Origin: Basidiobolus meristosporus CBS 931.73
Taxonomy: Eukaryota > Fungi > Basidiobolomycota
Reading direction: 5' to 3'
Assembly: GCA_002104905.1 (NCBI GenBank)
Contig: MCFE01000478.1
Coordinates: 4,399 to 68,398 of the forward strand
Length of the DNA: 64,000 bases
Shown here in pieces: positions 5,231 through 47,925 of this stretch. The notes below the pieces were generated by a model. The model worked only from the letters and a program-made list of their open reading frames with translations. It made no database searches and was not told where the DNA came from. The position numbers and the translations under genes were made by a program. Within the stretch, counting starts at the first letter, position 1. Every line of letters begins with the position of its first letter.

Positions 5231-8200
5231 TCACTTTTGTCTTTTGCTACGGCGTGATTTAGCGGTTGAGGTGCGCTTGGATCCAGGCGTGATCTTACGT
5301 GGTGGGTGTTCTCGTTTTTTTGTTGGGCAGTTTTTTGCCAAGTGACCCTGCTGCTCCATTCAATCCTTCAGTTCATCCATTCTAAAATTCCTGTCTCAAT
5401 GCTGTGCAATGTACCTTATTGCAAACAAAGCAATTATACTCCCTAGGATTCTTGGTACGAGCCGAAGGCGCATGCTTTGGGCAGTTTCTTGCGATATGTC
5501 CTACCTATCATTCAAGTACCGCTGAACATTGAGCTATCAATACAACAATATAAACTGTTCATTTACCTGACCACACTTATAACAAATCTCCGAGGAGCCT
5601 GGCAGCGAGATGCCGCCGCTATTACACTCATTTTCATCACGAGTTTCAAGCCACTGGAAGAAGGTACATCTTCCATTGGAGTTTAAGCAGGCGAAAAATG
5701 ATTTCCCTTTGTTTGGCCCATCCTTTGAAACAGTCCTGATAGTAGTCAATAGACCACAGTCACACACAGGGTTGTTTTCGTTTAAAGGATTATTCTGAAA
5801 ATAAAGTTGCTTAGTGCCCAAAATGGTTACTGCGAAGGTAAACTGCTATTTAGGACTCAACCCTGAGCTTACCATCACCACTTCAGAGACAATAGTTTCG
5901 CCCGTCAATTCCTGTCTGTTGCCCTCTAAATATTCCATCGAAGGAAACGATGGTACTTCGTCTTTCCATTGAAAAAAATCACAATTTTGTCCTTTAGGTT
6001 TCGGACAACCATAGAATTGTCTGCCAGTATTGGGTCCTCTTTTGCGTACAGTCTTGGCGCTGGCACGATCACCACAAGAACATTTAGGAATATTGGCATC
6101 GTCTATAACATTGCTGTTAGTGGACATCCTGAAATCTGCACTGTTGTGGTGAGCTTCCACTCTATGACCATTGTTTTTTGGTACATCAACGTTTGCTAAA
6201 ACAGGATCACGTTCGCAACATGCCTTGATCACGATAATCAGTACATGAAACACGGATTGTATATATACGTTATTCGCTTACCTGAAGGGTACAGGAATCT
6301 TCAAGCCATTGAAAGAAATCGCATCTATCTGCATCTTGGGGTTTAGAACAACAGAAAAATTGCCTCCCTTGATTAGGACCCTCTTTCTTCACTGTTCTGG
6401 AAACTGATTGCAGCCCGCAGTAGCATGATGGAATAGAGCCAATCTCTGCAAGAACCGGGCAACTAACATTGATGTTCTTATATCTCTCGTTAACAATACC
6501 ATTCTCGGCGTGATCTACTCCTGATCCTTCATCATTATCCTAATGGAGAGTGAGCACTTCATTAACGATTTTAAATGGTATGTGATAACACATACTTGAA
6601 ACAACTGATTCGGTTCGAGCTCCTCCGGATTATGGCCAAAATACCTCGCTAATGCCTAAACAAGGAATGAATATGCATCAAAAAACCGAGAAGCAAATCT
6701 GTTCCTACTTGCACAAGTTTGAAACTTTGATCATTGGTTTTGAGAAAAACATCTCGATACATCCCAACTCCTTGTCTTACGACCAACTCTTTGGTTTGTG
6801 ATCCCTCGCAGATTTTTCTCATGTTAAGCTCCATCTTGATTTCAGTAGTTGACTGTTAGTTGCATTCTAATCGACGTATAAACAGTAACGGGGCTTACTT
6901 CTCTTCTAAGAAACGGTTTGGAGAGAGATGTATTAAAATCAATACCATCATATCCTTCCACAAGGGCGATGCCTAATGTGGAGGGCACAAAATAGCTCGC
7001 TTCTTTGAATGCATAAGCGCGATCCAGAACCTTCTTGATATGTTCGTGGATTGTTGCATCAGTGCCTAAGCCGAAGATCAATCTACAACCCTCAGAATCA
7101 AGGACTGTTATTCCAACTAACCTATTCCATTTTTGTCCATTACTGCAATCAAGTCAGCCTCGGTTAAGAGAGAGGGAGGACTGGTTTTTCCCTCAGACAT
7201 TTCGATGCTATCAGGTATAAATTGCTCGCCCTTCTGGAAGACTGGGATAGTGGTTTCACTCCAGCGATCGTATGGATAAATTTCAAGGTAATTTCTGGCA
7301 ATAATCATCAAACCTATGTACCAAGGGTAGTGAATACTAATTAATTGGGGTATGCGTAGTTGTTTACCCTTTGTAGTGAAGACTTCGTCGGAAATGTTGA
7401 TCTCCACAGTGGTTTCATGGCCTTTAGCGTTGTCGGAACATGCAGCAAGAAACCTCCTAACAACAAACTCATAGACTTGTCGATCATCGCCAATCAAGTC
7501 TTTTGCCCAGGCTGTAGGGTGTATTGGCGGGTGTGCCTTGTCGTTATTTTTTCCTGTTCGTGGGGATTTGAACCCACCCGTCAAAAGCCTATTCACGGAA
7601 TAATAGGATCAGTTATAGGCGTTTCTCATTGATCAATAACCAGTATCACATTTTAGCATATGGACCCCACTGCTGATCGTGGACTTGTTTTTCGATTAGT
7701 GGTAGAAGCTGGAAGCTATTATCGAATTGATCAGTTTCAGTTCTGGGGTAACTTATGAAACCACGGTTATATAAACTCTCAGCAATCTTGTGTCAAAATA
7801 GATGTTAGCAAACTGAGACGATAGATGTACCAATACTAAGTCACCGTCATAATTCGGTCAGAAGTCATTTTGAGAAAACGTGCGCCAGATTTTTGGAGCT
7901 CAACTGTAGTTAATGGTAATGGCTTCCTGATTTTATGAGCGAGTGCAGATAAATATGTAGTTGAGGAGATCTGAAAGCAGCAAAGGCGGTTTACCATTTA
8001 CTGGTAGGCTTGGATTTCACTCCAGAAACCGTGGCCATGGAGTTTTCAACGCATTGTTCATACAAGATAAGACAAAACAATTGACAGTACATGGACCCTC
8101 TTTGCCAATTGAATCTGGCTAAACCATCAGCTCGATTGACACACACATCTATTTTCCAGAAATCCTCAGGGACGAAATTCTCGACTCGGAGGAACTGATC

Positions 8201-9192
8201 GACGATAAATCCGAGAGTAGGAAACTGACAGGGCCCTATATTGCATGGTCTCTATCAAGCACACCTTGAGTTGACATCATTAAGAGTTGTTACTGGCTTA
8301 CCATAGCTTATTACTTTTTCGTTCAGCTCATGAAACTGAGGACAGAGTTGTAACGTTTGAAACCGAGTGAAGGCCGCTCCGATTCTCAAGTCTAGCTCAG
8401 TGCGTGCATCAACTGCGTCTACTTGTCGGATATCTAGATTCAATGGGTTTTGACATGCATTATGGATTTCCCTATAGTAACCGGAATACAAGGGATCAAT
8501 ATCCTATACAAAATGACAACATAAATATGTAGATTTATTGGTACCTTGTCATAACTACGGAAAATCGAGCTCTCAGAACATGTATCCTATCATTCGCTTT
8601 GGAACAGATTTCCACGACTTCATGTCCAATATTTTCGCCTTCCCGATCACAATCGGTCCATATCATCAGTATCGAAGCATCTCTCACTTCTCGCTGCAGA
8701 TTTACCACGATGTCTTTAAAAGCCTATCAAAAAAGTGGATATTCATTGGATCCCGCCTTTGTTTAAGGATACAGGATAGCTATTTACCGGGTTTACTGAT
8801 TTATATACTGGTGCCTCGAACAGCGATGCTGGCGGGCAAGAATCCCACTTTTTGTGATTTGGTCCAAAATCCAATACCATTATATGCCCGAGCAATGAAG
8901 TCATCGTGAATTTGCATGTTTTCCCGTTGTATTTATACTGGAAGTCGAAGTTTTTGCAATATTTGTTTTTTCCGGCTCTCTAAATTGACAAAACAGTGAC
9001 CAACGCTGAGTACATTGCATGATACCAGTGACGTGAGGAATACAAAGCGGCAATCTTCATAGAACAATAGACCAATGGATCCTAAACCTCGATCTATTCC
9101 AAAATACCTACGGTACGAACGTTTCCTTTTGATAGTATCTGGGCGATGCTTTTGGCTATAGAGGGCTTCTCAGCAACACACAATATCTTCAT
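5231..9192 (-). CDS. TOP3: DNA topoisomerase III (Top3alpha type) with C-terminal 3x GRF zinc fingers and 2x CCHC knuckles
   Basis: MKILCVAEKPSIAK (Toprim), ELDLRIGAAFTRFQT, HPPIHP, LIAVMDKNGIGTDAT; GRF motifs CYCG..SRTVKKEGPNQGRQFFCC, CSCG..KTVRKRGPNTGRQFYGC, CDCG..RTVSKDGPNKGKSFFAC; knuckles CYKCGQVGHIARNC and CFVCNKQGHLAKNC after splicing. Confidence 0.92.
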
Positions 9193-11681: not shown

Positions 11682-12229
11682 TAAAGCAGAGTAATCACAC
11701 TTTGAACATCCACCAGTCAACACTGACAATCCTCGTGGATTTTAATCGACCAGTAAACATTAATCTTATCCGGAACACACTCCACCAATGATATGGGATA
11801 TACTCCAGGGACGGTCAAAATATGCCGTTTGAACCTGTGGAGAATATTATTAGACGTGACGTCAAAATTCCTATCATTGGATGTGATATTTTGGGACGAC
11901 CATAAGGGCACCTGAGGAGTACTGATCTCCCGGAAGCTAAAACTTCTCTTGGGCAGAATTCGGGATTTCAAAAGAATTACTGGACCTTGATTTTTCTCGA
12001 TGGTTTTTTTTCAAAGTCGATTCATTATCAATCGCTGGTGACCGTTGGATTGTCGTATTTTTTTACTTAACTACCAAGAGGCCCTTCGTTCCTTTCCTCA
12101 CAAAACTCGACTGGAAGCAGTTTGAGCGTTACTTCACTTGGTTGAATTTCACTTGCCACTTTCCCCCAAACATACAACCACCCTGCATTGTGGCCTTTTG
12201 GGTCTGAAACTCCCCTTCCTTTTGACAAT

Positions 12230-13662
12230 ATGAGTATGTGTTTCGTCGTAAAGTGGTTTCTTCTTCGTCAGCGCTAACAGCATTGTTGGGTCAGTAGGAA
12301 AAACTCCAACCTCAGCAAGCCGAAGAGGCAATCGCGGAGGCAGCAAACGTAGCAAGTCTGAAGAAGAGACTCGCTGCGTGTGCGGCCAGCAACGTAAGCT
12401 CCTTCATCACTCCTCCACCGCTTAAGTATCATTCTTTTTATTTATATCAACAGCTTTAGATCACGAAGGACTGATGATCCAGTGTGAACTATGCAAAGTA
12501 TGGCAACACTGCGCCTGCGTGGATATACTCGACGAGAAGGACTGTCCTGAGCAATATTTTTGCGAGCAGTGCAAACCAGAAAACCACCCATACCTGCAGT
12601 ACTACAAAAGCAACCTCAAAGCAAAGTACGTTTGTTTTCTATGTTCATACAGTGCTCTGTATGCTTACCTCTCACTGCAGTAGCCCGTTGAAGCCCAAAA
12701 AGCACTCTTCGGAGGGTGGCAATAGCACCCATTCTGACAGCAAGTCGTCAGATGAGAGTCGAAAGAAAAAGCGAGGAGACCAGCCTGATGGTCCCGAAGT
12801 CGAGCCCTTCTCCGACCTATCTGATCTTGATACTGAAGATGGTTATAGAAAGGAGAGTCGTTCGAAACGCACGAAGACTCCACGGAATCGCTCACCTAGT
12901 CCCATTTCCGCTGGTAGGAAGACTAAGGAATCCGAAAGCGATGAAGACTATCTTAGTCGCGGTGAGCGCAGGAAGAAAAAAGCCAATTCCACTCCCAAGA
13001 TCGAGGACCGCGATTACACGAGTTCCAAAAATAGAAAGCGTGATAATAAATCCAGTGGCCATGGTGATGAGGAGGTAGTGGCGAAAGAAGAAAGCCAGCA
13101 CCGAAAAGTGGCCAAAAAAGACACCAAAGGTATTCAATGATTACATCTTGTACACCCGAGTCAATTGGGCCTAACGTTTGAAGCAGAGTGCAGTAGCAGT
13201 CACGAGTCAGAAACTCCACAAAAACCTGCCTCATCTAACGAGGAAACACACACTAATGGGAAGCGAAAGAAGACTCGACGAAGCACGCCGGACCATTCTC
13301 GAAATTCATCTCGCTCGAAGGATGGTGTACACACCCCCGACAATAGACGTACGATTCAACTACTCATGACTTGACATATACCGAGATCGATTCTTACTGA
13401 GTTTCTAACGTTAGGTTCACCCCCGGTTCGAGTGAAAAACGTGAGCAATCGCATGACATTTCAAGACATGAACCGACGGACCAAGCATATTTTCGATTGC
13501 ATAACTCGTATACAGGTCTCTATGGCTGAGAAGGGAAAGGAGGAGGATGCAGGAGGAGCGGACCTGAATGGTAAAGGCTGTGAAGTAACAACCATGGAGA
13601 TGGTTGAAGGGCTCACTAGAAAACTAGTTCACTTTCAGGAACTGTATGGTGATATGCGTTGA
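12230..13662 (+). CDS. PHD-finger chromatin protein, Cti6-like (Rpd3L-associated)
   Basis: [26 protein letters not shown]...YFCEQC PHD finger; low-complexity basic/acidic middle; C-terminal [21 protein letters not shown] motif resembling Cti6. Confidence 0.75.
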
Positions 13663-14500
13663 GATTTATTCACACGATCTTTGCAAAGATTATCAGCTAC
13701 CTGGTACCTTGGGCAGTTGCTAATAAGCTGTAAAATAGAAGTCCATCCGAAAGCATACTCAGAGAATCCATTGTAATGATAAGGTCATTTCAGTTTGCTC
13801 TCAATTCTTTGCTAGTGTAACCGGATTTCAAAGAGTGTACATACATGTTCCCCAATTCTGCATCCACTGCTTCGTTTGACTATCTTGCGTCCCGTGCAAT
13901 AAATCGATTGAGCTTGAGCATCTACCTATTAATATAAAAGGAAGTAAGAAATCTGACTCTTGAGGAAAATTTATATGGCCGCAAGAGGCAGGGGATCAGT
14001 AATGGCCCATCCCCAGCCAATTGCAGAGCCGCCCAAATTAGAATTTACCCATGTCCACGTGATACGATCCATAAACAGAACTTCCCATTCACCATCCCTC
14101 ATTGTTTGTCATCCAGGATAACAACAAAACAGCCCCTTGATACGATTACCAATGGCTCATTATGAGTTTGTCAGTCTACCAATGCAGGCCCAATGCCACA
14201 TTTAAGCGCAACGTTACCCTTCACCCAAATTGGTCCTCCTTTTCTCAACGTGATCAAGAAAATGGGTGTCCGAGTGACTAATTTGGATGGTTCGGTTCAT
14301 GCTTGTGACACGCTTGGGGTGTTTGCCTTAGGTGTATGCCATGATCCTCTCAGCAATATAAATGGACTAGATCATTATACGTGTTCTCATACGTAGCTAC
14401 TGCTGATTCCCTTCTGATTTCCAGGTGAGATCGCTTGATGTGGCTCCATTGCGGCCTTTTCATTTCTTACCTTTGTAGTTGACATAGTGCCAGTACCATA

Positions 14501-16118
14501 ATGTCTCGTTTTCTCCGAAAGACATTCACGACCGGCTCGAGTCTAGCTCGTTTGGTACTAAGCCATGTGTTTATGAGTCTGGGTTTTGCTTGCTGAATCT
14601 TTTTATTTCGTGTAGTCGCAGCAAATCCGCTACCAAAGCATTGCTTCGGCCACTCACCAAGTAAGGCCATTTTCCGTTAGTCGTAAAAATTAGAAACCCT
14701 GCTGACAAGTCCTCTTTCTAGTCTGGCCCTTCCAAGGTCACGCATCCGGACGCTGACAACAACCCCAAAACCCTTGAGATACTGGCTGAGAGCGACAAAT
14801 ACATCCTCAACACCTACAGCAAGCCCTCGTTGGTCTTTACACACGGAAAAGGTTGCTACCTTTATGACCAGAGTAATCGTCGTTACTTGGACTTTTGCGC
14901 CGGAATTGCTGTGAATGCACTGGGTCATGCTGACGAAGAAATGACCCAGGTGCTTGCTGAACAAGCTTCGCAGTTGGTGCATCTTTCGAATCTTTTCCAT
15001 CACCAATGGAGTGGTGAGCTTGCTAAGGCTTTAGTGGAATCCACCAAAGCTTCAAGCGCTTTCCAAGCCAGTAAGGTGTTTTTGGCCAACTCAGGCACTG
15101 AGGCCAACGAAGGGGCCTTGAAGTTCATGCGCAAATGGGGGAAAATCATTTCTGATAAGGATGACAAGTTTGAAATAGTGTCTTGCTCCAACGGTTTCCA
15201 TGGTAGATCCATGGGTGCCTTGAGTTGCACACCCAATCCCAAGTATCAGAAACCATTCCTTCCATTGGTACCCGGGGTGAAGCACATTGATTTCAATGAT
15301 GTTGAGAGCATTAAAGCCAATATTACCGAGAAGACGTGTGGAGTTATCGTTGAGCCAGTTCAGGGTGAGGGTGGTATTTTCCCGGCCAAGGTTGAGTTCT
15401 TGCGTGCTATGCGAAAGCGTTGCGATGAAGTCGGTGCTTTGTTAGTTTTCGATGAGATCCAGGTAAGCTACCATCTCTGATCCTCGCCACCCACTGATCT
15501 CTAAAAGCGACTTTTGTTTAGTGCGGTCTTGGCAGAACCGGTAAATTGTGGGCTTTCGAGAACTTCCCGTCTGATGTCGTTCCAGATATCCTGACCTTGG
15601 CTAAGCCCTTGGCCAATGGCTTCCCCATTGGCGCTATTCTCATGAACGACAAAGTAGCAGACAAGATCAAGATAGGTAAGGGGATCACGTGCACATGCTG
15701 TTCATTCCCATGCTCACCACCAAGCATATTCACAGGCGATCATGGAACCACATTTGGAGGAAACCCCTTGGGTTGCCGTGTAGCATTGTCGGTATTCAAC
15801 CGCATTAGTCGCCCAGAGTTCCTCGCCAATGTAAATGAGACCGGAGCTCACTTGAAACAAGGCCTTCGGAATATCACCAATGGCAATCCCTTGGTCAAGG
15901 AGGTTCGTGGATTGGGGCTTATTCTGGGTGTGGAGTTCACAGTTGATCCCACGCCAATCGTCAAGATGGCCAGAGAGCGCGGACTGATCGTGATCACTGC
16001 CAGCAACAACACTGTTCGCTTGGTGCCCCCGCTGATCCTCACGAAAGAGGAAGCGGATCAAGGCCTTGCTATTCTGAAAGACTGCTTTGAGGAGTTCAAA
16101 GCTCAAACCCCCGTTTGA
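14501..16118 (+). CDS. ARG8: Mitochondrial acetylornithine aminotransferase, intact copy
   Basis: Presequence-like MSRFLRKTFTTGSSLARL; YLDFCAGIAVNALGH, NSGTEANEGA, FHGRSMGALS, IVEPVQGEGG, LLVFDEIQ|CGLGRTG, DILTLAKPLANGFP, HGTTFGGNPL. Confidence 0.95.
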
Positions 16119-16270
16119 TTGAATCATCCTATTTCTCATGAGGCTTCCAATGTAGATAAAGCGATGTTTGGTAGATGTCAATTGTAATGAGTGAGGAAAT
16201 AAAATGAAATGCAGTTTAATATGCTGACCCAGCACTGGGTGACCCCCTAAATCTGATCGAACACAGCCAT

Positions 16271-16882
16271 CTATTCTATCCAAGATCTGGAGTACCTGAA
16301 GTTGTCAGTTGATGCGGTGGTGATGGATTCTGGGATTTGCAAGCTCTCGCCAGCAGTGGCGTACGAGAGGTGCTGCTTAGATTCTCGCTTACTGCTCGCT
16401 ATCTGCTGTTTGTCATGTCGCCACGACATGTAATTGTAGACTTGCGAGACGATTGCGTAAATCACGCCTATGCAGTTTGAAAGGACGGCCAAAAATGGGA
16501 TGATTTTAAAGAACCCATTGAACGTCTTGTAAATCACCTTCAGAAGCAAGTCGGGTTAGAAATGGTGTGCAAGGTGTACGAACTCTGCGGCCGGTTACCT
16601 GAATTACCAGCTGTGGTATATCCTCAATCAAGATTCCCACACCTACGCATATCAGGATGTGATACCTGACTCGTGGTGAGAATGGCGCATTCAAGCTGCG
16701 GAGGTTACAGAAATTTGACGAAAGAATGAATATGAGGGCTGGATTGGTTGCCGCCAGGATAGTCACCGACGATGTTAGCAGCGTATGATTAGAGAACCAC
16801 TCGTGGAAGAGAGGATTCCTGGCCACTTCCTTGACGATGATATATGTAGAAGAGAACATATTGAAGCAAAATGGATTCACAA
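16271..16882 (-). pseudogene. 5'-truncated duplicate (last ~2 exons) of the membrane-protein gene at 21685-24499
   Basis: Near-identical to 21685-22296; homology stops abruptly at 16882 with no upstream coding sequence. Confidence 0.9.
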
Positions 16883-17148
16883 GATACGCTAAAAGGCTGA
16901 TAAGGCATCTCTACGAAAGGAATAACAATTACTCGCTTTAGCCATCTCGTAACAATTGTCTCGTTCTTCCGTCGTGGAGAGCATTTAAATTATTTATTAT
17001 TTTTTCCATAATGATAATGGGAGAGGCCAAGTTATACGACTGGGCCGATCCGGTAGGCTCTTTTCCCCCATCTTTCGGATCCCTAATACAGGTGAGAGAG
17101 GTGGGTAGGGACTGAACTAGGCTGCATAGACTCCAACATGACTGACCC

Positions 17149-19704
17149 CTAGAATAGATGGGCATAGTTACGGTCATAATCCATCTTGATTTTACGGACG
17201 ATCACTTCTGGTATCTCTTCTACTTCTGCCTCTTCCTCTTCTGCTTCTTCTGCTTCCGCTTCCTCGTCAACAGGCATGGATAGGGAGCGGACTTGGACAT
17301 AATCTAGCTGCATCATAGGCTGAACGCGAGGGGTCTCTGCGATCTGGAAGATCTCCTCAAGTATCTCTTCGTATTGTCGATTCGTGTAGTCTGGGAATCG
17401 ACTTTCGAATTGACTAATGGTAGGCGGATCGTATTGACTTGTCACAAACTTGCTTTTCAAGGCGTCGTATTTGTCTCTCTCGTCGTCTGTCAATCCTGCA
17501 ATGAACCAGTCGCGGGTTTCCTTGCTGAAGATGCAGTCGGTGATCTCATAGTAACGATTCGCGTTGTCCCCAGCCAGATCTGCGGCAAGGCGTAGGAAGA
17601 AAAGTCTTTGCTGCAAATCGTTCCAATCGTGCCTGAACTGAAGGACTTCAAGGTTGAATTGGCGGCCCATAGACATGTGTTTTCTACGCAAGATGTTGCG
17701 AACAGTTTTGATCGGCGTGATGTCAGGATTGTGGCACATTGCAACTGCCAGCGCGAGAGTATGAAACGCGTGATGAGACGCCCATTCAGCAGCGGCGGCA
17801 TGGTTGTTGGTTAGACCATCTGACCACTGCACCCCTACAGTTCGCTTTCCGACTTTGGCACCACTGCCGCCCATACCGGCGTCAAACGCATGGATTGGCT
17901 CTCCTTCCGTGGTCTGGAAATAACCACCTTTGCCGTATTCAGGCACGCCATCGATGATATTCTTGACAGCAGCACTGAGTGCGGGATCACGTTTGCGGTC
18001 GAATGTTTTGGGAGCGAGGAGAGCGTCGAACTTGGCATCATTAAAGGTGAACTTGTCATCTGAGAAGCCGATATCTCCAAAACCGCCTTCCACGTGTACG
18101 GCTATACCTGACGTGAACAACGCTGACATGATGTCCTGGATTGGCACTGGCGAGGCGTAGTTGAAAAAGAGCTGTTCAGACCAGCGTTTGAAAAAACTGG
18201 TGTTCGCGTCAGTGTCGTAGTTGGCGATGGAGCTGATCTCGGAGCAACTCGAGCTGAACATTGGCAAGCCGAGGCGTCCCGATCGAGAAAGCGGAGCCTC
18301 CAGAATAAGGTGCCTCTCGTGATCTTCAATATTGGACACGATGCCAGTGCCGATGGAAAATGCGGTATATCCTGCGCGTAGGAGACCGGTTTCCGTGGCA
18401 GCACTGTTGGGATATTGAAGGATGTCCTTGTGATACCTTTCCATATACTCTCGAACCGTGACCTGGCTGCCGTCACCCTTGACACGACTATTAACCTGAC
18501 TCGGTAGTTTTCTCAAGGTGCGTGCAATATGGGCCTCAAGGAACTCGTAGGCGATCGGGAGCCAGTTGGAATTGCGCTGCAGGCGCAGTGCATGCATATC
18601 ACGGGCGGAAAAGAACGAGCGTCCGCCACGCCAATTCGGGTCAAGAGCAGTGCGAGGCGGAGCCGGGCCGTTTTTCCCATGGCTAATGACAGTGATGAGG
18701 CCCTGATATTTCTCAGCATTGTGCTCTATGTACTTGATCGGATCGGTGGATATTTCGATATCTGGCAAGAAAGCAAGCAGTAGGGAAGCATAATCATAGA
18801 AGGAGAGACCCAAGCCGGTCAGGGCGATCTTTTTGTTGTTGTTTCTGATACGCCCATCTTCCAGAATTCCACGTCTTGTGAGGTATTCACGCATTGTTTT
18901 ATGGTTTGGAGTCGCGTGGTAGTAGGCCGTGGGGTTGACCTCGGGCTTCAGCGGAAGAGTCAAACGAGTACCATGGGCAAAGGAGACAAAGTCGAATTGC
19001 GCCGTCCTCTCGACACCTCCCGACTTGACCTTGATGCCCGGTTTCTGGGGATTCGTGTCAAAGTCGACACCAATCACCTCATGCGAGTAGAGGATATCAA
19101 TGACGATCTTGTCGGACATGTTATCTCGGATGTAGTCCAGTGCTTTTCTGATGTTCCGTCCCTGGATTTTGCCCCACTCGCCTCTGGTCATGCAAGCGAT
19201 AGAAGTGTTGGGCTCACCATGTTGGAAGGCATTCTTGAATAGGACGGCGGCAGGGGGATTGGTTTTTATGAGTTCCTCGAGAAGATCAGTGTATCGACCC
19301 TTCAACGAACCGTACATGGTACCAGGAAGATCTGCAATCTCCTTGAGCGTCTGAAACTCAGTGCTATTGACATTGCCAAGGAAGTTGGGGAGCTTGGTGA
19401 CCGGAGTGTTGACCGTGGCATCACAATCTTCCTGGAACGCATGGCCAAAGCCAGCAGTGTTTTCGCCCTGTTTTTCGAAGACGGTGTAGTGAAGCTTGAA
19501 GTTGACATGTCCCTTGATCTTGTCAAGTTTGTCTTGATAGGCAAGAATAACCATGGCCTGGTACATAAGGTAGAAAGCATGACGAGGCCCAAAACCTGAA
19601 AGGCCCCAGGTGATGGTGGTCACCTCGCTGTCACTAGGCGACTTGACGGGATCTAGAGGGGCCTGACCATTGATGGTGGAGCCGTTTGTAGCAGTAGAAT
19701 CCAT
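17149..19704 (-). CDS. Intronless 851-aa FAD/NAD(P)-binding oxidoreductase (NAD_binding_9 / CreE-FzmM-YdhS-like flavoprotein)
   Basis: GLSGFGPRH (GxGPR FAD Rossmann), YTVFEK, AGFGHAF..VNT, TRGEWG, FDFVSFAHG, second Rossmann IALTGLGLSFYD, PVPIQDIMSALFTSG; Glu-rich C-terminal tail. Confidence 0.8.
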   Translation of the reverse strand: MDSTATNGSTINGQAPLDPVKSPSDSEVTTITWGLSGFGPRHAFYLMYQAMVILAYQDKLDKIKGHVNFKLHYTVFEKQGENTAGFGHAFQEDCDATVNTPVTKLPNFLGNVNSTEFQTLKEIADLPGTMYGSLKGRYTDLLEELIKTNPPAAVLFKNAFQHGEPNTSIACMTRGEWGKIQGRNIRKALDYIRDNMSDKIVIDILYSHEVIGVDFDTNPQKPGIKVKSGGVERTAQFDFVSFAHGTRLTLPLKPEVNPTAYYHATPNHKTMREYLTRRGILEDGRIRNNNKKIALTGLGLSFYDYASLLLAFLPDIEISTDPIKYIEHNAEKYQGLITVISHGKNGPAPPRTALDPNWRGGRSFFSARDMHALRLQRNSNWLPIAYEFLEAHIARTLRKLPSQVNSRVKGDGSQVTVREYMERYHKDILQYPNSAATETGLLRAGYTAFSIGTGIVSNIEDHERHLILEAPLSRSGRLGLPMFSSSCSEISSIANYDTDANTSFFKRWSEQLFFNYASPVPIQDIMSALFTSGIAVHVEGGFGDIGFSDDKFTFNDAKFDALLAPKTFDRKRDPALSAAVKNIIDGVPEYGKGGYFQTTEGEPIHAFDAGMGGSGAKVGKRTVGVQWSDGLTNNHAAAAEWASHHAFHTLALAVAMCHNPDITPIKTVRNILRRKHMSMGRQFNLEVLQFRHDWNDLQQRLFFLRLAADLAGDNANRYYEITDCIFSKETRDWFIAGLTDDERDKYDALKSKFVTSQYDPPTISQFESRFPDYTNRQYEEILEEIFQIAETPRVQPMMQLDYVQVRSLSMPVDEEAEAEEAEEEEAEVEEIPEVIVRKIKMDYDRNYAHLF

Positions 19705-19763
19705 GTTGCTAGGGTGCGAGTGGCGGCGCTATAGGAGGTGAAGAGTGATTGAGAGATGTTCGC

Positions 19764-19790
19764 TTCAGCCACTTTTATACCTTGGCTGAA
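19764..19790 (-). promoter_or_regulatory. TATA box (TATAAAAG, minus strand) in the loop of an 8-bp inverted repeat upstream of the flavoprotein gene
   Basis: TTCAGCCA-cttttatacct-TGGCTGAA; TATA about 70 bp upstream of the ATG at 19704. Confidence 0.55.
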
Positions 19791-19829
19791 CGAGAGTGGG
19801 GCTACAGCAGACGAGCTTACAGTGAGGTT

Positions 19830-22296
19830 CAGGGGATCAGTTATGCAGAGCCACCCAAGTTAGAATTTACCCAGGTCCAAGTAATGTAGTCCATAAACAG
19901 CATTTCCTATTCACCATCCCTCATGGTTGTGTCATCCGGGGTAACAACCAAATTGCCCCTTGATACGATTGCCAATTGCTTATTATGAGTTTGTCAGTCT
20001 AAGCGCAACGTTACCCTTCACCCAAATTGGCCCTCCTTTTCTCAACGTGATCAAGAAAGTGGGTGGCTGACTAATTTGGATGGCTCAATTCATGCTTGTG
20101 ACAGGTGTTTGCCTTAGGTGTATGCCATGATCCTCTCAGCAATATAAATGGACTAGATCATTATACGTGTTCTCATACGTAGCTACTGCTGATTCCCTTC
20201 TGATTTCCAGGTGAGATCGCTTGATGTGGCTCCATTGCGGCCTTTTCATTTCTTACCTTTGTAGTTGACATAGTGCCAGTACCATAATGTCTCGTTTTCT
20301 CCGAAAGACATTCACGCCCGGCTCGAGTCTAGCTCGTTTGGTACTAAGCCATGTGTTTATGAGTCTGGGTTTTGCTTGCTGAATCCTTTTATTTCGTGTA
20401 GTCGCAGCAAATCCGCTACCAAAGCATTGCTTCGGCCACTCACCAAGTAAGGCCACTTTCCGTTAGTCGTAAAAATTAGAAACCCTGCTGACAAGTCCTC
20501 TTTCTAGTCTGGCCCTTCCAAGGTCACGCATCCGGATGCTGACAACAACCCCAAAACCCTTGAGATACTGGCTGAGAGCGACAAATACATCCTCAACACC
20601 TACAGCAAGCCCTCGTTGGTCTTTACACACGGAAAAGGTTGCTACCTTTATGACCAGAGTAATCGTCGTTACTTGGACTTTTGCGCCGGAATTGCTGTGA
20701 ATGCACTGGGTCATGCTGACGAAGAAATGACCCAGGTGCTTGCTGAACAAGCTTCGCAGTTGGTGCATCTTTCGAATCTTTTCCATCACCAATGGAGTGG
20801 GGGAGTTGATTTCTTGCGTGCTATGCGAAAGCGTTGCGATGAAGTCGGTGCTTTGTTAGTTTTCGATGAGATCTAGGTAAGCTACCATCTCTGATCCTCG
20901 CCACCCACTGATCTCTAAAAGCGACTTTTGTTTAGTGCGGTCTTGGCAGAACCGGTAAATTGTGGGCTTTCGAGAACTTCCCATCTGATGTCGTTCCAGA
21001 TATCCTGACCTTGGCTAAGCCCTTGGCCAATGGCTTCCCCATTGGCGCTATTCTCATGAACGACAAAGTAGCAGACAAGATCAAGATAGGTAAGGGGATC
21101 ACGTGCACATGCTGTTCATTCCCATGCTCACCACCAAGCATATTCACAGGCGATCATGGAACCACATTTGGAGGAAACCCCTTGGGTTGCCGTGTAGCAT
21201 TGTCGGTATTCAACCGCATTAGTCGCCCAGAGTTCCTCGCCAATGTAAATGAGACCGGAGCTCACTTGAAACAAGGCCTTCGGAATATCACCAATGGCAA
21301 TCCCTTGGTCAAGGAGGTTCGTGGATTGGGGCTTATTCTGGGTGTGGAGTTCACAGTTGATCCCACGCCAATCGTCAAGATGGCCAGAGAGCGCGGACTG
21401 ATCGTGATCACTGCCAGCAACAACACTGTTCGCTTGGTGCCCCCGCTGATCCTCACGAAAGAGGAAGCGGATCAAGGCCTTGCTATTCTGAAAGACTGCT
21501 TTGAGGAGTTCAAAGCTCAAACCCCCGTTTGATTGAATCATCCTATTTCTCATGAGGCTTCCAATGTAGATAAAGCGATGTTTGGTAGATGTCAATTGTA
21601 ATGAGTGAGGAAATAAAATGAAATGCAGTTTAATATGCTGACCCAGCGCTGGGTGACCCCCTAAATCTGATCGAACACAGCCATCTATTCTATCCAAGAT
21701 CTGGAGTACCTGAAGTTGTCAGTTGATGCGGTGGTGATGGATTCTGGGATTTGCAAGCTCTCGCCAGCAGTGGCGTACGAGAGGTGCTGCTTAGATTCTC
21801 GCTTACTGCTCGCTATCTGCTGTTTGTCATGTCGCCACGACATGTAATTGTAGACTTGCGAGACGATTGCGTAAATCACGCCTATGCAGTTTGAAAGGAC
21901 GGCCAAAAATGGGATGATTTTAAAGAACCCATTGAACGTCTTGTAAATCACCTTCAGAAGCAAGTCGGGTTAGAAATGGTGTGCAAGGTGTACGAACTCT
22001 GCGGCCGGTTACCTGAATTACCAGCTGTGGTATATCCTCAATCAAGATTCCCACACCTACGCATATCAGGATGTGATACCTGACTCGTGGTGAGAATGGC
22101 GCATTCAAGCTGCGGAGGTTACAGAAATTTGACGAAAGAATGAATATGAGGGCTGGATTGGTTGCCGCCAGGATAGTCACCGACGATGTTAGCAGCGTAT
22201 GATTAGAGAACCACTCGTGGAAGAGAGGATTCCTGGCCACTTCCTTGACGATGATATATGTAGAAGAGAGCATATTGAAGCAAAATGGAATCACAA
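19830..22296. repeat. Segmental direct duplication, copy 2
   Basis: Matches 13989-16882; first ~280 bp diverged with indels, remainder ~99% identical apart from a 372-bp deletion. Confidence 0.95.
20287..21532 (+). pseudogene. ARG8: ARG8 pseudogene copy
   Basis: In-frame 372-bp deletion (HQWSG joined to GVDFLRAM) plus CAG>TAG stop at 20874-20876 immediately before the intron donor. Confidence 0.93.
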
Positions 22297-24499
22297 AGAA
22301 TATCACTGAAGGGGCGCGTAATGAGCGAATATCCCCACTGTTCAACAAAACGAAGAGTAAGTCGGTACAGAAATCGAAGACTGAGATGAATATGACAAAT
22401 ACAACAGCGTTGTCACTTGAGGGGTATTTTCTTCGAAGAAATGCAAACGCAGCAATTAGAACCACCACCACAACGCCTAATAGGATGAATTTGACCTTGT
22501 TACTTCGAAACAAATCTTCTTCCACGGTCACTCCAAATTCACTGTTCAATGTTTGCGTGTACTGTCCTTTGGACAAAGGACTACGAGCTTTCGTTCTAAT
22601 CATTTCCTGAAAATCGTTCACGATGGCAGTGGCTGTCCGATTTTGAGATGCCGCTATTTTTGTAATCGTGATCTGATATATATCGCCAGCATTATCCTGT
22701 CGTAGGAAACTTGCGCTTATTCGGTTGGCCTCCACTGGCAAGGCCTCAGTTAGCTCTCTGGTCAGATTATTGGCAACTTCAGATCTCTCAATAGTATTGT
22801 TTAGATCTAAGGCTACTTGAACAGTAATATCGTCCTTTTCATCTTTCGACAGTTCAGCATTGGGAGTGGTAACTCGCCATTGATACGGTGATAGGCCCTC
22901 CAATGGTTCCGAGACAGCGCTTTGGAAAGTACCACCATCGATGGTAATGTAGTACTCTGTCCCAGGTAAATTCAAGGCATAGCCGTCTAGAGTGAAATTG
23001 AATGTGTCTCCCCGGATAGGCGTGTCAGAAGACACGGAGAGAACCTGCCGCGGATATTCAGGTCGATTTGCATCATAGACATAGATGTGTCCCAGAGAGG
23101 TGGAATAGTCGGATTGAATAAATGTCAGGGAAAACCGCTGTGTTGTGCTAATCTGAGCTACTCCACCTTGTATTGGGTATGTTGTCTTGATAATTGGATT
23201 GTTCCCATAATCTGACGCATTGAGAAACTTGGGTGGATTGTCAATTCGAGCTCTAAAGCCAGGAACTACGAAAAACCCGGCCCCAGAAGTTGAAGTATCG
23301 TATGTGAGAGATGCAACTGAGTTGTTAGGAAAGGACACCAGTCCGGTAGGGCCGAGAGTATTATTCTCGAACGGATAATAGGACCAGTAGCGATCGTAAA
23401 GTTGAACATAACTGGTGATCCCTTGATTATTACTTATCTTGTTGTCCGATAGTAACAACGCTCCCCCGTAGGGTAAAGATGCAGCCCTAGTGATTCCGAT
23501 CCCCCTCGACACTTGTATAGTAGAGTTTCCCAAGAGTGTAGGCAGGTCAAACTGAGAGCCAGTTGAGGAAAACACCGTGCTGTAGGTGTATCGAGTGATA
23601 TTGACGTTAGGATTATTGTCAGTTGGCTGAACAATATAGTCATATATACAGACATGCCCATCTCCAGCTTTCAGTAGACTGCATTTGTTGATTATCAGAT
23701 AGTCCGCTCTATTCACAACTTTTGTTTTCTCGGCTGTGGCGACAATAAAACTTCGAGATGTTTGGAACCCACCAGGGCTGGAGAGATAGTTTGCACGGAG
23801 TATATTATCTCCTGATGGGGATTTACAAGCCCAATTAATCATAAAAAAGCGATCTGGAGATGGGACCACTGAGATAGTCGGTTGAAAAGGAGCACTGGTG
23901 TTGTAGATGTTGTCCGCTATTCTCGTCATATTGACTACATTGCCATATAGATCGAAAAATATGCTTCCCACAAAAGGTGCAGTAAGATTTGCGCCCCTAC
24001 TTACACCTGCCAAAAGGATATGGTCTAAGCCTTTGGCCACGGAGAAGAGTTCGAAACCCCCATCCAATAATTTAGGCTCCCCGATCTTAGTCATTGTCTT
24101 GTCGTAGCGATCTACCATAACTCCAAATTTTGTTTTCACTAGCGGTAAGTAGAAATGCAGGAAGCCACCGTCCGGAGTAGGGACAAAGGCATTGTCTTCC
24201 GTAGAGAGAACCTTTGTCAAGTTCGCATTTTCATTGATTTTGTTACCGTCAAAGTCATACATCTCCAACAGGCCTGGGAGTAGGATTTTGTCCATTCTTT
24301 GGACGCGTCCTGCGTCATCCGTTAGGTTTTGAGTCAGGAAAGCCTGCTCACTGACGTATCTTGTGAAGTACCACAGTATCCTCTCCTGTGGAAGGACTGT
24401 GGCCTCATATTTTGGAATGAGATACTCTTGCGCGGTGATTGTAGACATAGACCCCAGGAATAAGCACCAAAAAGAAAGAATAAGCCGGCAACGAACCAT
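21685..24499 (-). CDS. Large signal-peptide membrane protein: ~650-aa ectodomain with an Ig-like (Big_5/SbsA-like) segment plus a multi-TM C-terminal module
   Basis: MVRCRLILSFWCLFLGSMSTITAQ; FSLTF..GHIYVYD..PGTEYYITIDGGTF; TM helices FILLGVVVVVLIAAFAFL, FDFCTDLLFV, IEDIPQLVIQ; one intron near the 3' end. Confidence 0.85.
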
Positions 24500-24680
24500 G
24501 CTATATACAAAAGATCGAATGAGTATATGCGCTGGAGTAGATGACACCCAGCTTTTATCAGAGGCCGTAGGCTAGAGTCAACAAAATTGGAATCTGATTT
24601 GCGCCCAGACGAAGCTAAGCCCTTAATTAACAATTAACAAGTATCATTGGAAGTTTATTTCTATATATTACAGAAGCCCA

Positions 24681-37214: not shown

Positions 37215-38722
37215 TCGAAGTGAAGCCAGCAAACCTTATTCATTCTAATCAATCTTTGTATCACCACACCTTCTACTTTCCTACATGGCCTGTAATTTCC
37301 ACCCCTTCTTTCTCTTCCTCTCATCGACCCCCCACCATTTTACTTTATTCATGAAATTTATATACTTTTACTAGGAAATATTAGTTTGTGACCGTTCCTT
37401 TTAAATATAGAGAAAATAAATCCTGTAGACGTAAACTGCCACGGATGTGCTTCCCATAGATAATGCATGGTACAATGAGCAGCGATTTAGCTTTGCTCGC
37501 AGCAATGGAATCTGTTGGACACTTACTGTGTGCTCTCAGGAATGCGGTGCTCACCACCAAACGTGCCAAAACAAAGTCATGGCGAGGGGCATTCAGAGGA
37601 CACCAAACACTCAAACCAAGAGAAGGGATGAAGTTTACAAACCCAAGACACCAAACCCTCGGAAACCCCCTACTATCTACGAGAAAAGAAACCTATCTTA
37701 TCCGCGAAACGTTTTCCATACCTCAACTCACTTGGCTGAATTACCAAAAAAGTGGAACCGGTGCAACTCTGTCGCTGGCTGTTCACCTCCACGACCTGCT
37801 AGCTATAACCACCATATTCTCGGATGCGATTTGCTTCCCACATTGCAATAGAAATTTTCTGGAGCAATTTCTATCATGGGCTACTCGCTCTTTTCATATG
37901 ATTAAAGTGGACTCGACTGACGCCACCACGATAGCTTTTCAGAGTGTGAGTGCCTAAAGTGGCTGCCCCAGCGGGCTCGGGTGCCTATTTGCCACTTTGG
38001 TGAAATCATGGCTGACTCGTGTATACATTCCATTAACCAGCATGTCGAAGTACACTTTGGTCAGCTAACGAAGTAACACAATCCCTCATGGCCACCTAAG
38101 CACGTCACAGTTGGGTGGGATTAGAACTACCTTTCATATTCAAATATACTCACCCACCCAAAATAGCAAGCAAATTCACCGATTGTTGGTCCCTAATCCA
38201 CTCATAGTGGACAGCTATTCCGTTGGGTCAGTTTGTACCAATTGGAGTTAATTGGGGACGTCAAACACTGAGCACAACGGGGGTCAATTCCAACCCTCCA
38301 ACCCCACTTTCCACCCCAACGAAGTCATTTTAAGCAGTAGTCTTCCCAAAAAAGTCTCCCGAACCCAATACTCAGCGCACACTACCAACGGAGCAGATCA
38401 TGTTAGTAAGAATCAATTGAGGGGTCACTGGACATTTCCACACCACACGAATCCTACAAGTCCAATAGGATTTGATTAGCTTAGTTTTAAACTAATTAGA
38501 AAAAAATGGGGCCATGTTCTTGAATATCACCTGAATGTAACGTCGGTGAGCGCTTTCTATTTGGTGGTGGGTGTGATCGAAATCGAGCCCCTGCTCAGAT
38601 CCGGATGATTCGAGCCATTCCCTTGTTTTTCTATCAGCTAAATAGCCCTCGTCCCCGACTCTGCTACTTCGTCCTCATTGCTTTTGAGTCCTTAGCCTTC
38701 GCTCTTCTTACACCAGTTTAAT

Positions 38723-39637
38723 ATGTCTGTCCAAAAGAAAGAAAAGAACTTCGCCGTTGATTTCCTCATGGGTGGTGTCTCCGCCGCTGTCTCCAAGACC
38801 GCCGCTGCCCCCATCGAGCGTATCAAGCTCCTCATCCAGAACCAAGATGAGATGATCAAGAGCGGTCGTCTTTCCCACCCATACAAGGGTGTCGCTGACT
38901 GTTTCACTCGTGTCATCAAGGAGGAAGGTACCGTCTCCCTCTGGAGAGGTAACATGGCCAACGTCATCCGTTACTTCCCCACCCAAGCTTTGAACTTCGC
39001 CTTCAAGGACTACTTCAAGCAAATGTTCGGTTACAAGAAGGACAAGGACGGCTACTGGAAGTGGTTCGCTGGTAACCTTGCCTCCGGTGGTGCCGCTGGT
39101 GCCTTCTCCCTCTTCTTCGTGTACTCCTTGGATTACGCTCGTACCCGTCTTGCCAACGACAACAAGTCCGCCAAGAAGGGAGGAGAGCGTCAATTCAACG
39201 GTCTCGTTGATGTCTACCGCAAGACCCTCAAGTCTGACGGTGTCGCTGGTTTGTACAGAGGCTTCAACATCTCCTGTGTTGGTATCATCGTCTACCGTGG
39301 TTTGTACTTCGGTATGTACGATTCCTTGAAGCCTGTTCTCCTCGTCGGAGAGCTCAAGGACTCCCTCCTCGCCTCCTTCTTGTTGGGTTGGGGTATCACC
39401 ATTGGTGCTGGTCTCGCTTCTTATCCTATCGATACTGTCCGTAGAAGAATGATGATGACTTCCGGTGAAGCCGTCAAGTACACCTCCTCCATGCAATGCT
39501 TCCAAGAGGTTATCAAGAAGGAGGGTTACAAGTCTCTCTTCAAGGGAGCCGGTGCTAACATTCTCCGTGCTGTTGCTGGTGCTGGTGTGTTGGCTGGATA
39601 TGACAAACTCCAAGCCGTCTTCGCCAACAAGTTCTAA
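38723..39637 (+). CDS. AAC: Mitochondrial ADP/ATP carrier, copy 1
   Basis: [36 protein letters not shown] signature; intronless. Confidence 0.97.
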
Positions 39638-40162
39638 GTTAATTAGGCTAGCAAACCCCGAATTTTCTAATTCGCTCTATTTATTATGTAGATTAGAAGC
39701 ATTCATAATAAACAGCATTCATCATTCTTTATTAACAATACCTATCGTCACAGTAAAATTTTCTTCTTAACCTTCATGATGACGAATGTTTCACGCATGG
39801 ATCCCCTTTATATTTTTGGGGGGTTATGCATTCCATATCGAACCATATGATTATTTTCCTTGATCCGATTAGGTTTACCATGTGGTTTACCATAAAATCC
39901 ATTACGTTCCAAAATCCCAGGGTTTATTCTAGGATGTGTAGCTTGCTCATTTGCCTATTTACTATTGAAATCGTAGAACGCTTCAACAGATTATTGTAGT
40001 AGGGATACTCCACTGTGGTGCGATTATCAAAGCTAAAGGTTACTATGCAATAGAAAATGTGTTTTCGTCTGAAGAGCAATTTTATTGAATGCTAAACATG
40101 TCTTCATTATTTGGTATGTGTGAACACAAATGCAATTAATGTGGATGAGATGAGAATTAAAT

Positions 40163-41077
40163 TTAGAACTTGTTGGCGAAGACGGCTTGGAGTTTGTCAT
40201 ATCCAGCCAACACACCAGCACCAGCAACAGCACGGAGAATATTAGCACCGGCTCCCTTGAAGAGAGACTTGTAACCCTCCTTCTTGATAACCTCTTGGAA
40301 GCATTGCATGGAGGAGGTGTACTTGACGGCTTCACCGGAAGTCATCATCATTCTTCTACGGACAGTATCGATAGGATAAGAAGCGAGACCAGCACCAATG
40401 GTGATACCCCAACCCAACAAGAAGGAGGCGAGGAGGGAGTCCTTGAGCTCTCCGACGAGGAGAACAGGCTTCAAGGAATCGTACATACCGAAGTACAAAC
40501 CACGGTAGACGATGATACCAACACAGGAGATGTTGAAACCTCTGTACAAACCAGCGACACCATCAGACTTGAGGGTCTTGCGGTAGACATCAACGAGACC
40601 GTTGAATTGACGCTCTCCTCCCTTCTTGGCGGACTTGTTGTCGTTGGCAAGACGGGTACGAGCGTAATCCAAGGAGTACACGAAGAAGAGGGAGAAGGCA
40701 CCAGCGGCACCACCGGAGGCAAGGTTACCAGCGAACCACTTCCAGTAGCCGTCCTTGTCCTTCTTGTAACCGAACATTTGCTTGAAGTAGTCCTTGAAGG
40801 CGAAGTTCAAAGCTTGGGTGGGGAAGTAACGGATGACGTTGGCCATGTTACCTCTCCAGAGGGAGACGGTACCTTCCTCCTTGATGACACGAGTGAAACA
40901 GTCAGCGACACCCTTGTATGGGTGGGAAAGACGACCGCTCTTGATCATCTCATCTTGGTTCTGGATGAGGAGCTTGATACGCTCGATGGGGGCAGCGGCG
41001 GTCTTGGAGACAGCGGCGGAGACACCACCCATGAGGAAGTCAACGGCGAAGTTCTTTTCTTTCTTTTGGACAGACAT
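40163..41077 (-). CDS. AAC: Mitochondrial ADP/ATP carrier, copy 2 (identical protein, convergent orientation)
   Basis: 915-bp CDS differing from copy 1 at 4 synonymous sites by eye. Confidence 0.97.
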
Positions 41078-41719
41078 GTTAAGCAAGAGAGGAGATGGTT
41101 CTGTACTAGAAGTTAGACAACTTGGTCGGGTCGGCCACCGCGAGTATTTATTCAAAACGAGAAAGTGGAAAATTTTTTGTACTCTCCCCACTTCCAAAAT
41201 TTCCCCGCTTCACGTAGGGATGAGGTTGGACACACCATTCTATTGGGGAAATTCGTTTGGTCCAATAACACTCCACCATTACCAAGGTTTCTCCCCAATT
41301 GCATTAGGAATTCCGAGAGTGGGGTACCAAATATGTCGTACCTACCAATTCTACCGCCTACTTTCGAACCTTCCTATCTCCAGTGATTCTTACCTTCGCT
41401 CGCGATTAATCGCAATACTCCCTAATTTTGGCCTGCTTCCAATTGGATATATGATTCATGAAATCGACAGGAATGGGATGGGAATAGGGATGGGGACGGT
41501 GATAGTGATGGTGATAGTGATGAAATGGTTTTTTGCCCATAAATTTTCGCCAGTAAACGTTGCGGAGCCTATTAGCTCGCTGGGGCTTGCAATATCTATT
41601 TACCCTTGGACTGGTGGATGGGATGATTAGGCTTTTTTAGTATAGATTGGTGTACTTTTGGGCAGTCAAGCATCCGAGCTGGTCATGGGGGACAATTAAT
41701 GATTCCTGTTACACAGGAT

Positions 41720-46294: not shown

Positions 46295-47080
46295 GTTGAC
46301 AACGGTTAGGTGCTAATCACCAGGAGCGCAAACCTTTTATTATATTGTCTCAAATTAACGCCGGGCCCAATCAGATCCCCCCATCCGACATGCTGCGGGT
46401 TCGCCAAAAATTTCGCTCGACTTCTTTCACATCCAACTTCCCCACGTCCATCTCATTGGCTGGCACCGATAATCAATCCCTCTGATTCGCCGCAGCCTTT
46501 CGGAAACTGATCGGTGCTCATGAATTGGGTCTCCGCCGAATTGGCCCTACTACCAAAGCGCACCAATGGACTCTTACACTAACTTGATTTGGGTCGGTCG
46601 CTTTGCTTGCTTCAGGCATTTCCACTTGCTGATCTGTCTATAAGCCCCGGTTAAGATAACATCCATCAACACTTCCATTAATACTTCACCGACCTACCCA
46701 GGGATGATTGGTTGGTGGATCTGGGCTTCAGCACTCTCCAAGCATAGGTTTGGTATTCCATGACAAAACTGGTGTTCAACATACATACACCAAGTGCGGT
46801 TGCTTCCTTTGAACTCAATTGACCAATAACCCTTGGAAACTTTTGGTGGACTCCATCACAATATCTGAAAAAATCCAACTTGCAGCATGCTCACAACTCT
46901 CCAAGGGTTGGGGTCAGGGTTCATGTTGTAGGGTAAGAGATTGAAAGTAGTTGGGCTGGGTGGCTTTCATGTACTAACTTTTTGAGTGCAGAAGCAGTGC
47001 ATATATGTTTACAAGGTCTTGGCCAAACAGTCCTTTCCCATATGTTTAGGAAGGTCCAAAGTGTTGTAAATATTGTAATT

Positions 47081-47400: not shown

Positions 47401-47504
47401 CCAATATCTCCAAACCTGATACAACAGGTTATGAGCCCCAAGCAATCACTTGCTGTAATGTCTATTCCTGTAATTACTGGTACTTTCCCCCTTTTGCTGA
47501 AAAG

Positions 47505-47920: not shown

Positions 47921-47925
47921 GTCAT

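Follow-up and report, generated by a model that had tools for sequence, protein, structure and literature searches.

In a 64,000-nt stretch of the genome of the fungus Basidiobolus meristosporus CBS 931.73 (contig MCFE01000478.1; hereafter the window, whose positions are used as coordinates), an intronless gene for a predicted 851-aa flavoprotein lies on a 2947-bp segment between two direct copies of a host interval. We estimate a probability of about 0.68 that this segment is a foreign insert that entered the B. meristosporus lineage after the split from B. ranarum, by fungal gene transfer, and that its gene encodes an N-oxygenase-type flavoprotein. The anatomy of the locus, an empty site in B. 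ranarum, the protein fold, a link to a known protein family, and a gene tree carry this reading.

The arrangement was evident when the window was compared with itself by blastn. Positions 15391-16882 match 20805-22296 at 99.6% identity without a gap, and a second, collinear match joins 14022-15014 to 19844-20800 at 92.9%. Alignment of the edges moved the left boundary of the repeat out to 13989/19830, past a 19-bp indel, and placed the right boundary at 16882/22296, where homology ends abruptly. The copies are thus exactly those, 13989-16882 (copy A) and 19830-22296 (copy B, or A'), that the original prediction had placed around the insert. Copy A holds the ARG8 upstream region, ARG8, the intergenic DNA, and a 3' fragment of an 875-codon gene, and copy B runs unbroken into the remainder of that gene. 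The segment between them (16883-19829, here U) is one compact transcription unit on the minus strand with no other match in the window, as had been claimed, and the A-U and U-A' junctions are known from the assembly sequence. The original prediction had also reported no terminal inverted repeats, long terminal repeats (LTRs), or transposase. On the first point, neither inverted repeats of at least 40 nt nor a transfer RNA gene was found in the 10-26 kb part of the window; on transposases the result covers less, with no such domain found by Pfam in the 851-aa open reading frame (ORF), the sole protein of the insert searched for one.

The sister species shows what the site looked like without the insert. 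B. ranarum contig JASJQH010000078.1 (L009) is reverse-collinear with window positions 7000-33367 and keeps the order topoisomerase, NUDIX, PHD, ARG8, the 916-aa orthologue, HMGL-like, zf-MYND, LYR, and RNA polymerase. Copy A is orthologous to positions ~12200-15300 of this contig, where a single ARG8 stands tail to tail with the orthologue of the 875-codon gene, and 16883-19829 has no match anywhere in the collinear contig. Since B. ranarum has this undisturbed, single-copy interval without an insert, both the insert and the duplication are derived, and the earlier description of an insert between two host copies gains a direction. The ancestral arrangement is best read as L-A-R and that of the window as L-A-U-A'-R. 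No syntenic, vertically inherited orthologue of the gene, which would speak against transfer, was found at the B. ranarum site.

The insert consists of the ORF (17149-19704, minus strand; 2556 bp, intact, with an ATG start) together with 125 bp of upstream and 266 bp of downstream sequence. A putative TATAAAA box at 19773-19779 on the minus strand lies 75 nt upstream of the ATG, in agreement with the TATA promoter proposed earlier, and a putative AATAAA at 16993-16998, also on the minus strand, follows the stop codon by 151 nt. Both lie inside the insert, which on these predicted signals is a self-contained, eukaryotic-style gene with a TATA box, an intronless ORF, and AATAAA. A retrocopy was considered and rejected, as a poly(A) tract is absent from the 3' end of the insert.

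The nature of the protein is clearest from its fold. An AlphaFold2 model built from an 88-sequence alignment reached a predicted local distance difference test score of 90.9 and a predicted template modelling score of 0.90, with disorder confined to the first ~17 residues and an acidic tail beyond ~795. In a structural search of 48,161 PDB representatives that was independent of Foldseek, the top match was FzmM, the Streptomyces L-aspartate N-hydroxylase (8cp2_A; Z 15.6, root-mean-square deviation 4.3 A, 487 of 600 residues, model residues 30-655). SidA came second (Z 13.8, 396 residues), followed by other flavoenzymes with two dinucleotide-binding domains. Foldseek concurs (FzmM, E 4e-10), and an earlier, weaker model likewise gave FzmM. 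The model has a Rossmann unit at 29-250 with a helical insertion, a second nucleotide-binding unit from 293, helices at 367-532, and returning strands at 535-625. In FzmM, a helical substrate domain is wedged between the flavin adenine dinucleotide (FAD) and reduced nicotinamide adenine dinucleotide phosphate (NADPH) domains (PMC10404684), and the model (residues ~29-655) has the same three domains in the same order. An extra C-terminal helical domain at ~635-790, absent from FzmM, precedes the disordered acidic tail. On this model, the window protein has an FzmM-like three-domain flavoprotein monooxygenase fold.

The family around the protein is rare, as a profile search of 1.84 billion representatives recovered no more than 160 clusters, of which about 90 are full length. 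One bridging member, P0111, matches the family profile at E 5e-31 and also matches PF13454 (NAD_binding_9) over residues 51-249 with 46.2 bits against a gathering cut-off of 21.8 (E 6e-12). When the window clade was aligned to P0111 with hhalign, the probability was 99.6% (E 4e-24, 603 columns, window residues 37-680). By way of P0111, the protein is therefore transitively homologous to a bona fide PF13454 domain. For another homologue, P0011, almost every Atlas neighbour is an NAD_binding_9 cluster, and one such cluster bears the name HpyO/CreE-like. The window protein has no direct PF13454 match at gathering score, nor do 55 of the 57 scanned members of the family. The earlier assignment to a CreE/FzmM/YdhS-like protein of the NAD_binding_9 group thus stands as a fold and as a linked family, while the hidden Markov model that it invoked gives no direct match.

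The flavoprotein motifs listed in the original prediction are present and coincide with the conserved positions of the family. Counted over 88 members, R174, G245, and G297 are invariant, and N99 (86), G37 and G39 (85 each), D304 (87), R351 (81), R41 (70), and E77 (63, with Asp in 14 more) are nearly or largely so; the window protein keeps them all. Two dinucleotide-binding motifs can be traced through G37-x-G39-P-R-H, E77, G297-x-G-L-S-x-x-D304, and a C-terminal GD-type D608...G615. Four arginines (R41, R174, R351, and R443) are conserved in the family alignment and may or may not correspond to those of FzmM; the Streptomyces enzyme binds L-aspartate through a cluster of Arg13, 276, 416, and 577 with Asn413 in the helical domain.

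Taken with the fold match to FzmM and the P0111 bridge to PF13454, the retained cofactor motifs place the protein on a far, unannotated branch of the NAD_binding_9/FzmM-CreE type flavoprotein monooxygenases, which are class-B-like. The likeness to the nitrosuccinate-forming FzmM and CreE (PDB 8CP2 and 8CP5) extends from the top structural match, domain order, and PF13454 link to the GxGPR start, the invariant Asn after the first Rossmann unit, and the second motif GxGLSxxD. However, identity is 13-14%, and the window protein has ~200 extra residues (C-terminal helical domain and acidic tail) and a His for the third Gly. At the fungal loci examined, no gene for a nitrosuccinate lyase (CreD/FzmL-type, Lyase_1) was called next to the homologue, and the flanks in the window match ordinary B. 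ranarum genes (ARG8, PHD-domain, HMGL-like). With such low identity and no lyase partner nearby, membership of the FzmM/CreE orthologous group is unsupported. The class B ornithine and lysine N-hydroxylases SidA, PvdA, and KtzI also superpose on the FAD and NADPH cores (Z 13.3-13.8, 380-396 residues) and use NADPH and O2 on amines, which is the chemistry that we infer for the window protein, namely N-oxygenation of an amine or amino acid. They differ in that the window protein has no PF13434 match, a much larger substrate helical domain (as in FzmM), and no siderophore gene context at its locus. The YdhS/HpyO-type FAD-NAD(P)-binding proteins of NAD_binding_9 are connected through the Atlas neighbours of P0011 and through P0111, which scores above the cut-off, whereas the window protein and the 55 members noted above miss the Pfam model; the proteins of this family are also about 200-300 residues longer.

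Some indication of chemistry comes from environmental relatives. Genes for haem-dehydratases (aldoxime-dehydratase-like, PF13816) adjoin the homologues P0011 (ENA ERZ27237391) and P0173 (ENA ERZ27237619), which are separate lineages flanking the fungal clade in the tree. The P0011 contig also carries a fumarase-class lyase (Lyase_1) and then a separate, ordinary N-hydroxylating monooxygenase, a combination that resembles a CreD/CreE-type pair. These PF13816 neighbours hint at oxime or nitrile chemistry; no aldoxime-dehydratase neighbour was found at the Seiridium locus.

The homologues with names are mostly from Mortierellomycota (Mortierella sp. GBAus27b, M. polycephala, Benniella, Linnemannia, M. 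alpina, and Dissophora), together with Orbilia oligospora TWF173 and the more distant Seiridium and Marasmius. The closest is that of Mortierella sp. GBAus27b, at 58-62% identity, and no B. ranarum protein is among the homologues found. In a maximum-likelihood tree (LG+C20+F+G4, 32 rows), the window sequence is sister to Mortierella sp. GBAus27b (100/99), Orbilia joins next (97/94), and all of these lie inside the other Mortierellaceae. Both an empty orthologous site in the sister species and nesting within another lineage are thus present, as horizontal acquisition demands. The original prediction of such an acquisition holds, although the immediate donor looks fungal rather than bacterial: a Mortierellaceae-like fungus is the likeliest donor on the sequences at hand. 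The true donor must be unsampled, since the 38-42% protein divergence far exceeds that accumulated by the flanking repeat. The Orbilia copy (L006, JAAGKP010000004.1, 10001-12670) belongs to a nematode-trapping ascomycete and is itself nested in the Mortierellaceae clade; that it forms a single-member 90% cluster suggests a second, strain-limited transfer.

A direct bacterial origin, with the Mortierellaceae copies being parallel acquisitions from related bacteria, has several points in its favour. Among the environmental sequences of the sister clade, one comes from a bacterial-looking contig (LysR, fumarase-class lyase, tight gene spacing) and some come from eukaryote-like contigs, and the window gene is intronless. 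Moreover, 934 candidates for bacterial transfer have been reported in CBS 931.73, with the same composition as the host, and bacterial-type genes are common to Basidiobolus and Mortierella (PMC7466969). The transfers described by Tabima and colleagues in 2020 resemble the window gene in being intronless, host-like in composition, and set among native genes. However, the closest relatives of the window gene are fungal (47-62% identity, compared with 41-44% for the environmental clade), it shares with the fungal clade alone a C-terminal extension that closes with the conserved motif DR-N-Y...F, and its insert has eukaryotic promoter and polyadenylation motifs. Its locus also differs from those in that study (PMC7466969) in the visible empty sister site and flanking duplication. 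A search of 185,579 bacterial and archaeal species genomes with narrow, back-translated patterns returned no relatives, and a metagenome scan found two loci only, one already among the homologues. We regard a direct bacterial origin as unlikely.

Flanking repeats are not confined to the window. The homologue in Mortierella sp. GBAus27b (L003, JALLLQ010000010.1:173907-196450; gene at L003 10001-12544) has an unrelated location, among Crinkler-domain genes and between ~4.6-kb direct repeats (L003 4765-9422 and 15157-19655) that are 97-98% identical, mosaic, and include Crinkler-domain genes. Its layout is A-U-A', as in the window. The flanking gene of this locus was found elsewhere only on metagenome contigs of at most 4.2 kb, so there is no empty site for comparison. 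On soil contig WNFR01004536.1 (L001), a 778-aa homologue (6469-8805) lies between 1.7-kb direct repeats (12-1742 and 12398-14234) of 80-86% identity; the contig is eukaryotic-looking, has hardly another long ORF, and ends inside its repeats. No flanking repeats were found at six other homologue loci within the DNA examined, and the neighbours differ at all nine loci. This recurrence may reflect a common integration route or duplication-prone neighbourhoods.

These observations would also fit an unrecognised kind of mobile unit, with the gene as its cargo or engine, that regularly duplicates kilobases of target DNA when it integrates. The two further loci with flanking repeats and the change of neighbours at every locus favour this explanation, but no terminal or flanking sequence outside the ORF is shared among the nine loci except by two near-identical Benniella-type loci (sensitive blastn, 6-kb flanks). 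Inverted repeats of at least 40 nt are absent from 10-26 kb of the window, the fold is that of a flavoenzyme without a nuclease or integrase domain, and six of the loci lack repeats within the DNA examined. Such a unit is improbable. Nor does the segment qualify as a known type of transposable element (with terminal inverted repeats, LTRs, or a Helitron-like structure). Its flanking repeats are single-copy host genes in B. ranarum, and the sole long ORF tested for an encoded transposase or integrase (17149-19704) is that of the flavoenzyme. As a tentative extension of fungal transfer, and one that we think doubtful, the flavoenzyme gene may move as a naked single-gene unit among Mortierellaceae, Basidiobolus, and Orbilia, with integration repeatedly taking a replication or break-repair route and so duplicating kilobases of the target.

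The age of the duplication can be judged from a three-way alignment with B. ranarum. From about 14325 onward (~2.5 kb), copies A and A' are 98-100% identical, while identity drops to 90.0% in the leftmost ~330 bp of the repeat, beside the U-A' junction, where 281 aligned bases contain 28 substitutions and 5 indels. Otherwise the copies differ by six further single-nucleotide polymorphisms (SNPs) and a 375-bp in-frame deletion in the ARG8 of copy B. The duplicated DNA is 40-83% identical to B. ranarum (40-56% in its non-coding part), compared with 90-100% between the copies, so that the duplication clearly took place after the two species split. This mosaic may represent an older duplication whose interior was later homogenised by gene conversion, or it may represent a recent event with error-prone repair synthesis beside the breakpoint. 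Raised variant density at breakpoints has been addressed in other work (PMC4937565), and the window may have extra mutations of this kind beside one breakpoint. Under the older-duplication reading, a 2556-bp ORF that is still open would argue for purifying selection, with ~23 indels expected without constraint; under the recent-event reading, it tells little. Repeat-induced point mutation was rejected as a source of the diverged left edge, where 19 transitions, 9 transversions, and indels do not follow its pattern.

The gene and duplication could instead be old in Basidiobolus, inherited vertically, and lost in B. ranarum by recombination between the direct copies. Recombination between A and A' would precisely restore the single-copy arrangement of B. 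ranarum, and gene conversion, for which the mosaic identity offers a sign, could keep the copies similar. However, the most diverged part of the repeat still has 90% identity, compared with 40-56% for the same non-coding DNA between species, the gene sits deep inside Mortierellaceae instead of branching outside, and no B. ranarum homologue is among the matches. We consider an old duplication very unlikely. That A-U-A' is an assembly artefact, such as a tandem join of two haplotypes or a chimeric read, could appeal to the ~2.5 kb of repeat at 98-100% identity and to the repeat-rich genome of the strain, but it is hard to credit when a 375-bp deletion, five indels, 28 left-edge substitutions, and six further SNPs separate the copies, when the insert meets unique host sequence at two distinct junctions that repeat collapse or expansion cannot make, and when the assembly was built from PacBio reads (PMC7466969).

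If fungal transfer after the split is correct, the simplest origin would be a single break-repair or replication template-switch event. The foreign DNA would most likely have come from a Mortierellaceae-like fungus, or by way of a shared vector; next to the fungal clade lie environmental sequences, of which at least one is on a contig that looks bacterial. A left end broken at 16882 and a right end broken at 13989, 2.9 kb apart, could have been present on two sister chromatids or at a collapsed fork, and joining both ends through the foreign fragment would give L-A-U-A'-R. Afterwards, one working gene would have been retained per copy: ARG8 in A, and the 3' end of the 875-codon gene in B. There are precedents for such outcomes. 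Of 40 mouse transgenic lines, 6 had host DNA duplicated next to the integrated exogenous DNA (PMC6396414), and segmental duplications in yeast arise from broken forks by a replication-based route (PMC2518615). The window resembles these cases in having foreign DNA exactly at the junction of a direct target duplication, with no transposon-like ends. It differs in being a natural event, fixed in a wild fungus and with a working-looking gene, whose one-step mechanism we infer from the scar alone.

Several observations weigh against this account or temper it. The GC content at third codon positions of the insert ORF is 0.58, and its codon usage and relative synonymous codon usage distance fall within the range of neighbouring host genes; the codon-usage comparison proposed in the original prediction thus found the ORF indistinguishable from host genes, and composition lends transfer no support. 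Sequence databases are equally silent about the protein: Pfam gave no model match even at E up to 10, NCBIfam gave noise only, and PDB sequences gave no match by single-sequence search or by a profile of the 13 closest homologues. An 88-member profile reached weak PDB matches only (E ~1e-3), to a halogenase and bacterial flavin-containing monooxygenases at the DFVxxAxG motif. The third glycine of the FAD motif is replaced by His in the window protein (GFGPRH). This is no sign of decay, since the position varies in the family (G in 31 members, N in 12, S in 12, T in 12, A in 9, and H in 8). In the tree, a Mortierellomycota-only clade was rejected (delta lnL, the log-likelihood difference, 225; approximately unbiased test p 2e-50) for a group picked after the tree was seen, and several transfers out of one unsampled source could also give the nesting. 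Finally, horizontal transfer is already frequent in the CBS 931.73 genome, and a foreign gene there is unsurprising in itself.

The host genes at the site bear the marks of the duplication. As the original prediction had noted for most of the flanking genes, both ARG8 and the 875-codon gene are interrupted by introns, and their exons and ORFs were searched one by one. The complete ARG8, in copy A (14713-16118, plus strand), is of the acetylornithine aminotransferase type (Aminotran_3) with at least two exons, 14722-15477 and 15522-16115, whose ORFs, searched singly and unjoined, match PF00202 at E 5e-58 and 9e-42. It has 90% amino acid identity with the B. ranarum gene and is presumably functional. 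The ARG8 of copy B (20499-21532, plus strand) lacks the 375 bp that correspond to 15015-15390 in copy A. This deletion, at 20800-20805, removes exactly 125 codons in frame, is bordered on both sides by sequence 98-100% identical to copy A, and makes the alignment skip B. ranarum coordinates 14127 to 13751. Because these codons are missing, this copy is probably inactive.

The intact 875-codon ORF (21920-24547, minus strand) crosses the right edge of copy B and is complete only through that copy. It has no Pfam domain, matches the NCBI model K493DRAFT_410651 at 97%, and is 65% identical to B. ranarum K7432_002793. Its truncated 3'-end duplicate (16274-16882, minus strand) lies directly downstream of the inserted gene, differs from 21688-22296 at 4 positions in 609 bp, and includes ORFs (16274-16555 and 16509-16910) that match positions 12200-12851 of the B. 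ranarum contig.

Elsewhere in the window, an LTR retrotransposon occupies 53073-60735. Its 1.07-kb terminal repeats (53073-54145 and 59661-60735) share 92.7% identity, it encodes reverse transcriptase, RNase H, and integrase zinc-binding domains (57761-59701), and a tnp2-type transposase fragment is nested in it at 54888-55571. An integrase-core ORF (61041-61907) lies just outside, and an inverted 394-bp LTR fragment (50107-50500) lies upstream. Two mitochondrial-carrier genes (38718-39644 and 40155-41082), 99.2% identical, inverted, and 510 bp apart, represent a recent inverted duplication, and 47080-48572 holds several 270-340-bp repeat copies, direct and inverted, at 77-82% identity.

For gene transfer into fungi, a tree is usually the only evidence, and integration itself can almost never be seen. 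Here, an empty sister site, both junctions, and the target duplication are all preserved, and so the locus provides a concrete case for the entry of foreign DNA into a fungal chromosome. What is unusual about it is the fungal donor signal, the preserved scar with its empty site, and the uncharacterised enzyme branch. N-oxygenating flavoenzymes make nitro, oxime, hydroxamate, and N-N bonded natural products, and the gene defines a very rare branch of such enzymes, for which the environmental aldoxime-dehydratase-like neighbours offer a testable lead on chemistry. If the gene does move as a naked unit whose integration duplicates its target, an insert at the junction of a tandem duplication would be a recognisable natural scar of eukaryote-to-eukaryote transfer, like the scars left by laboratory transgenes.

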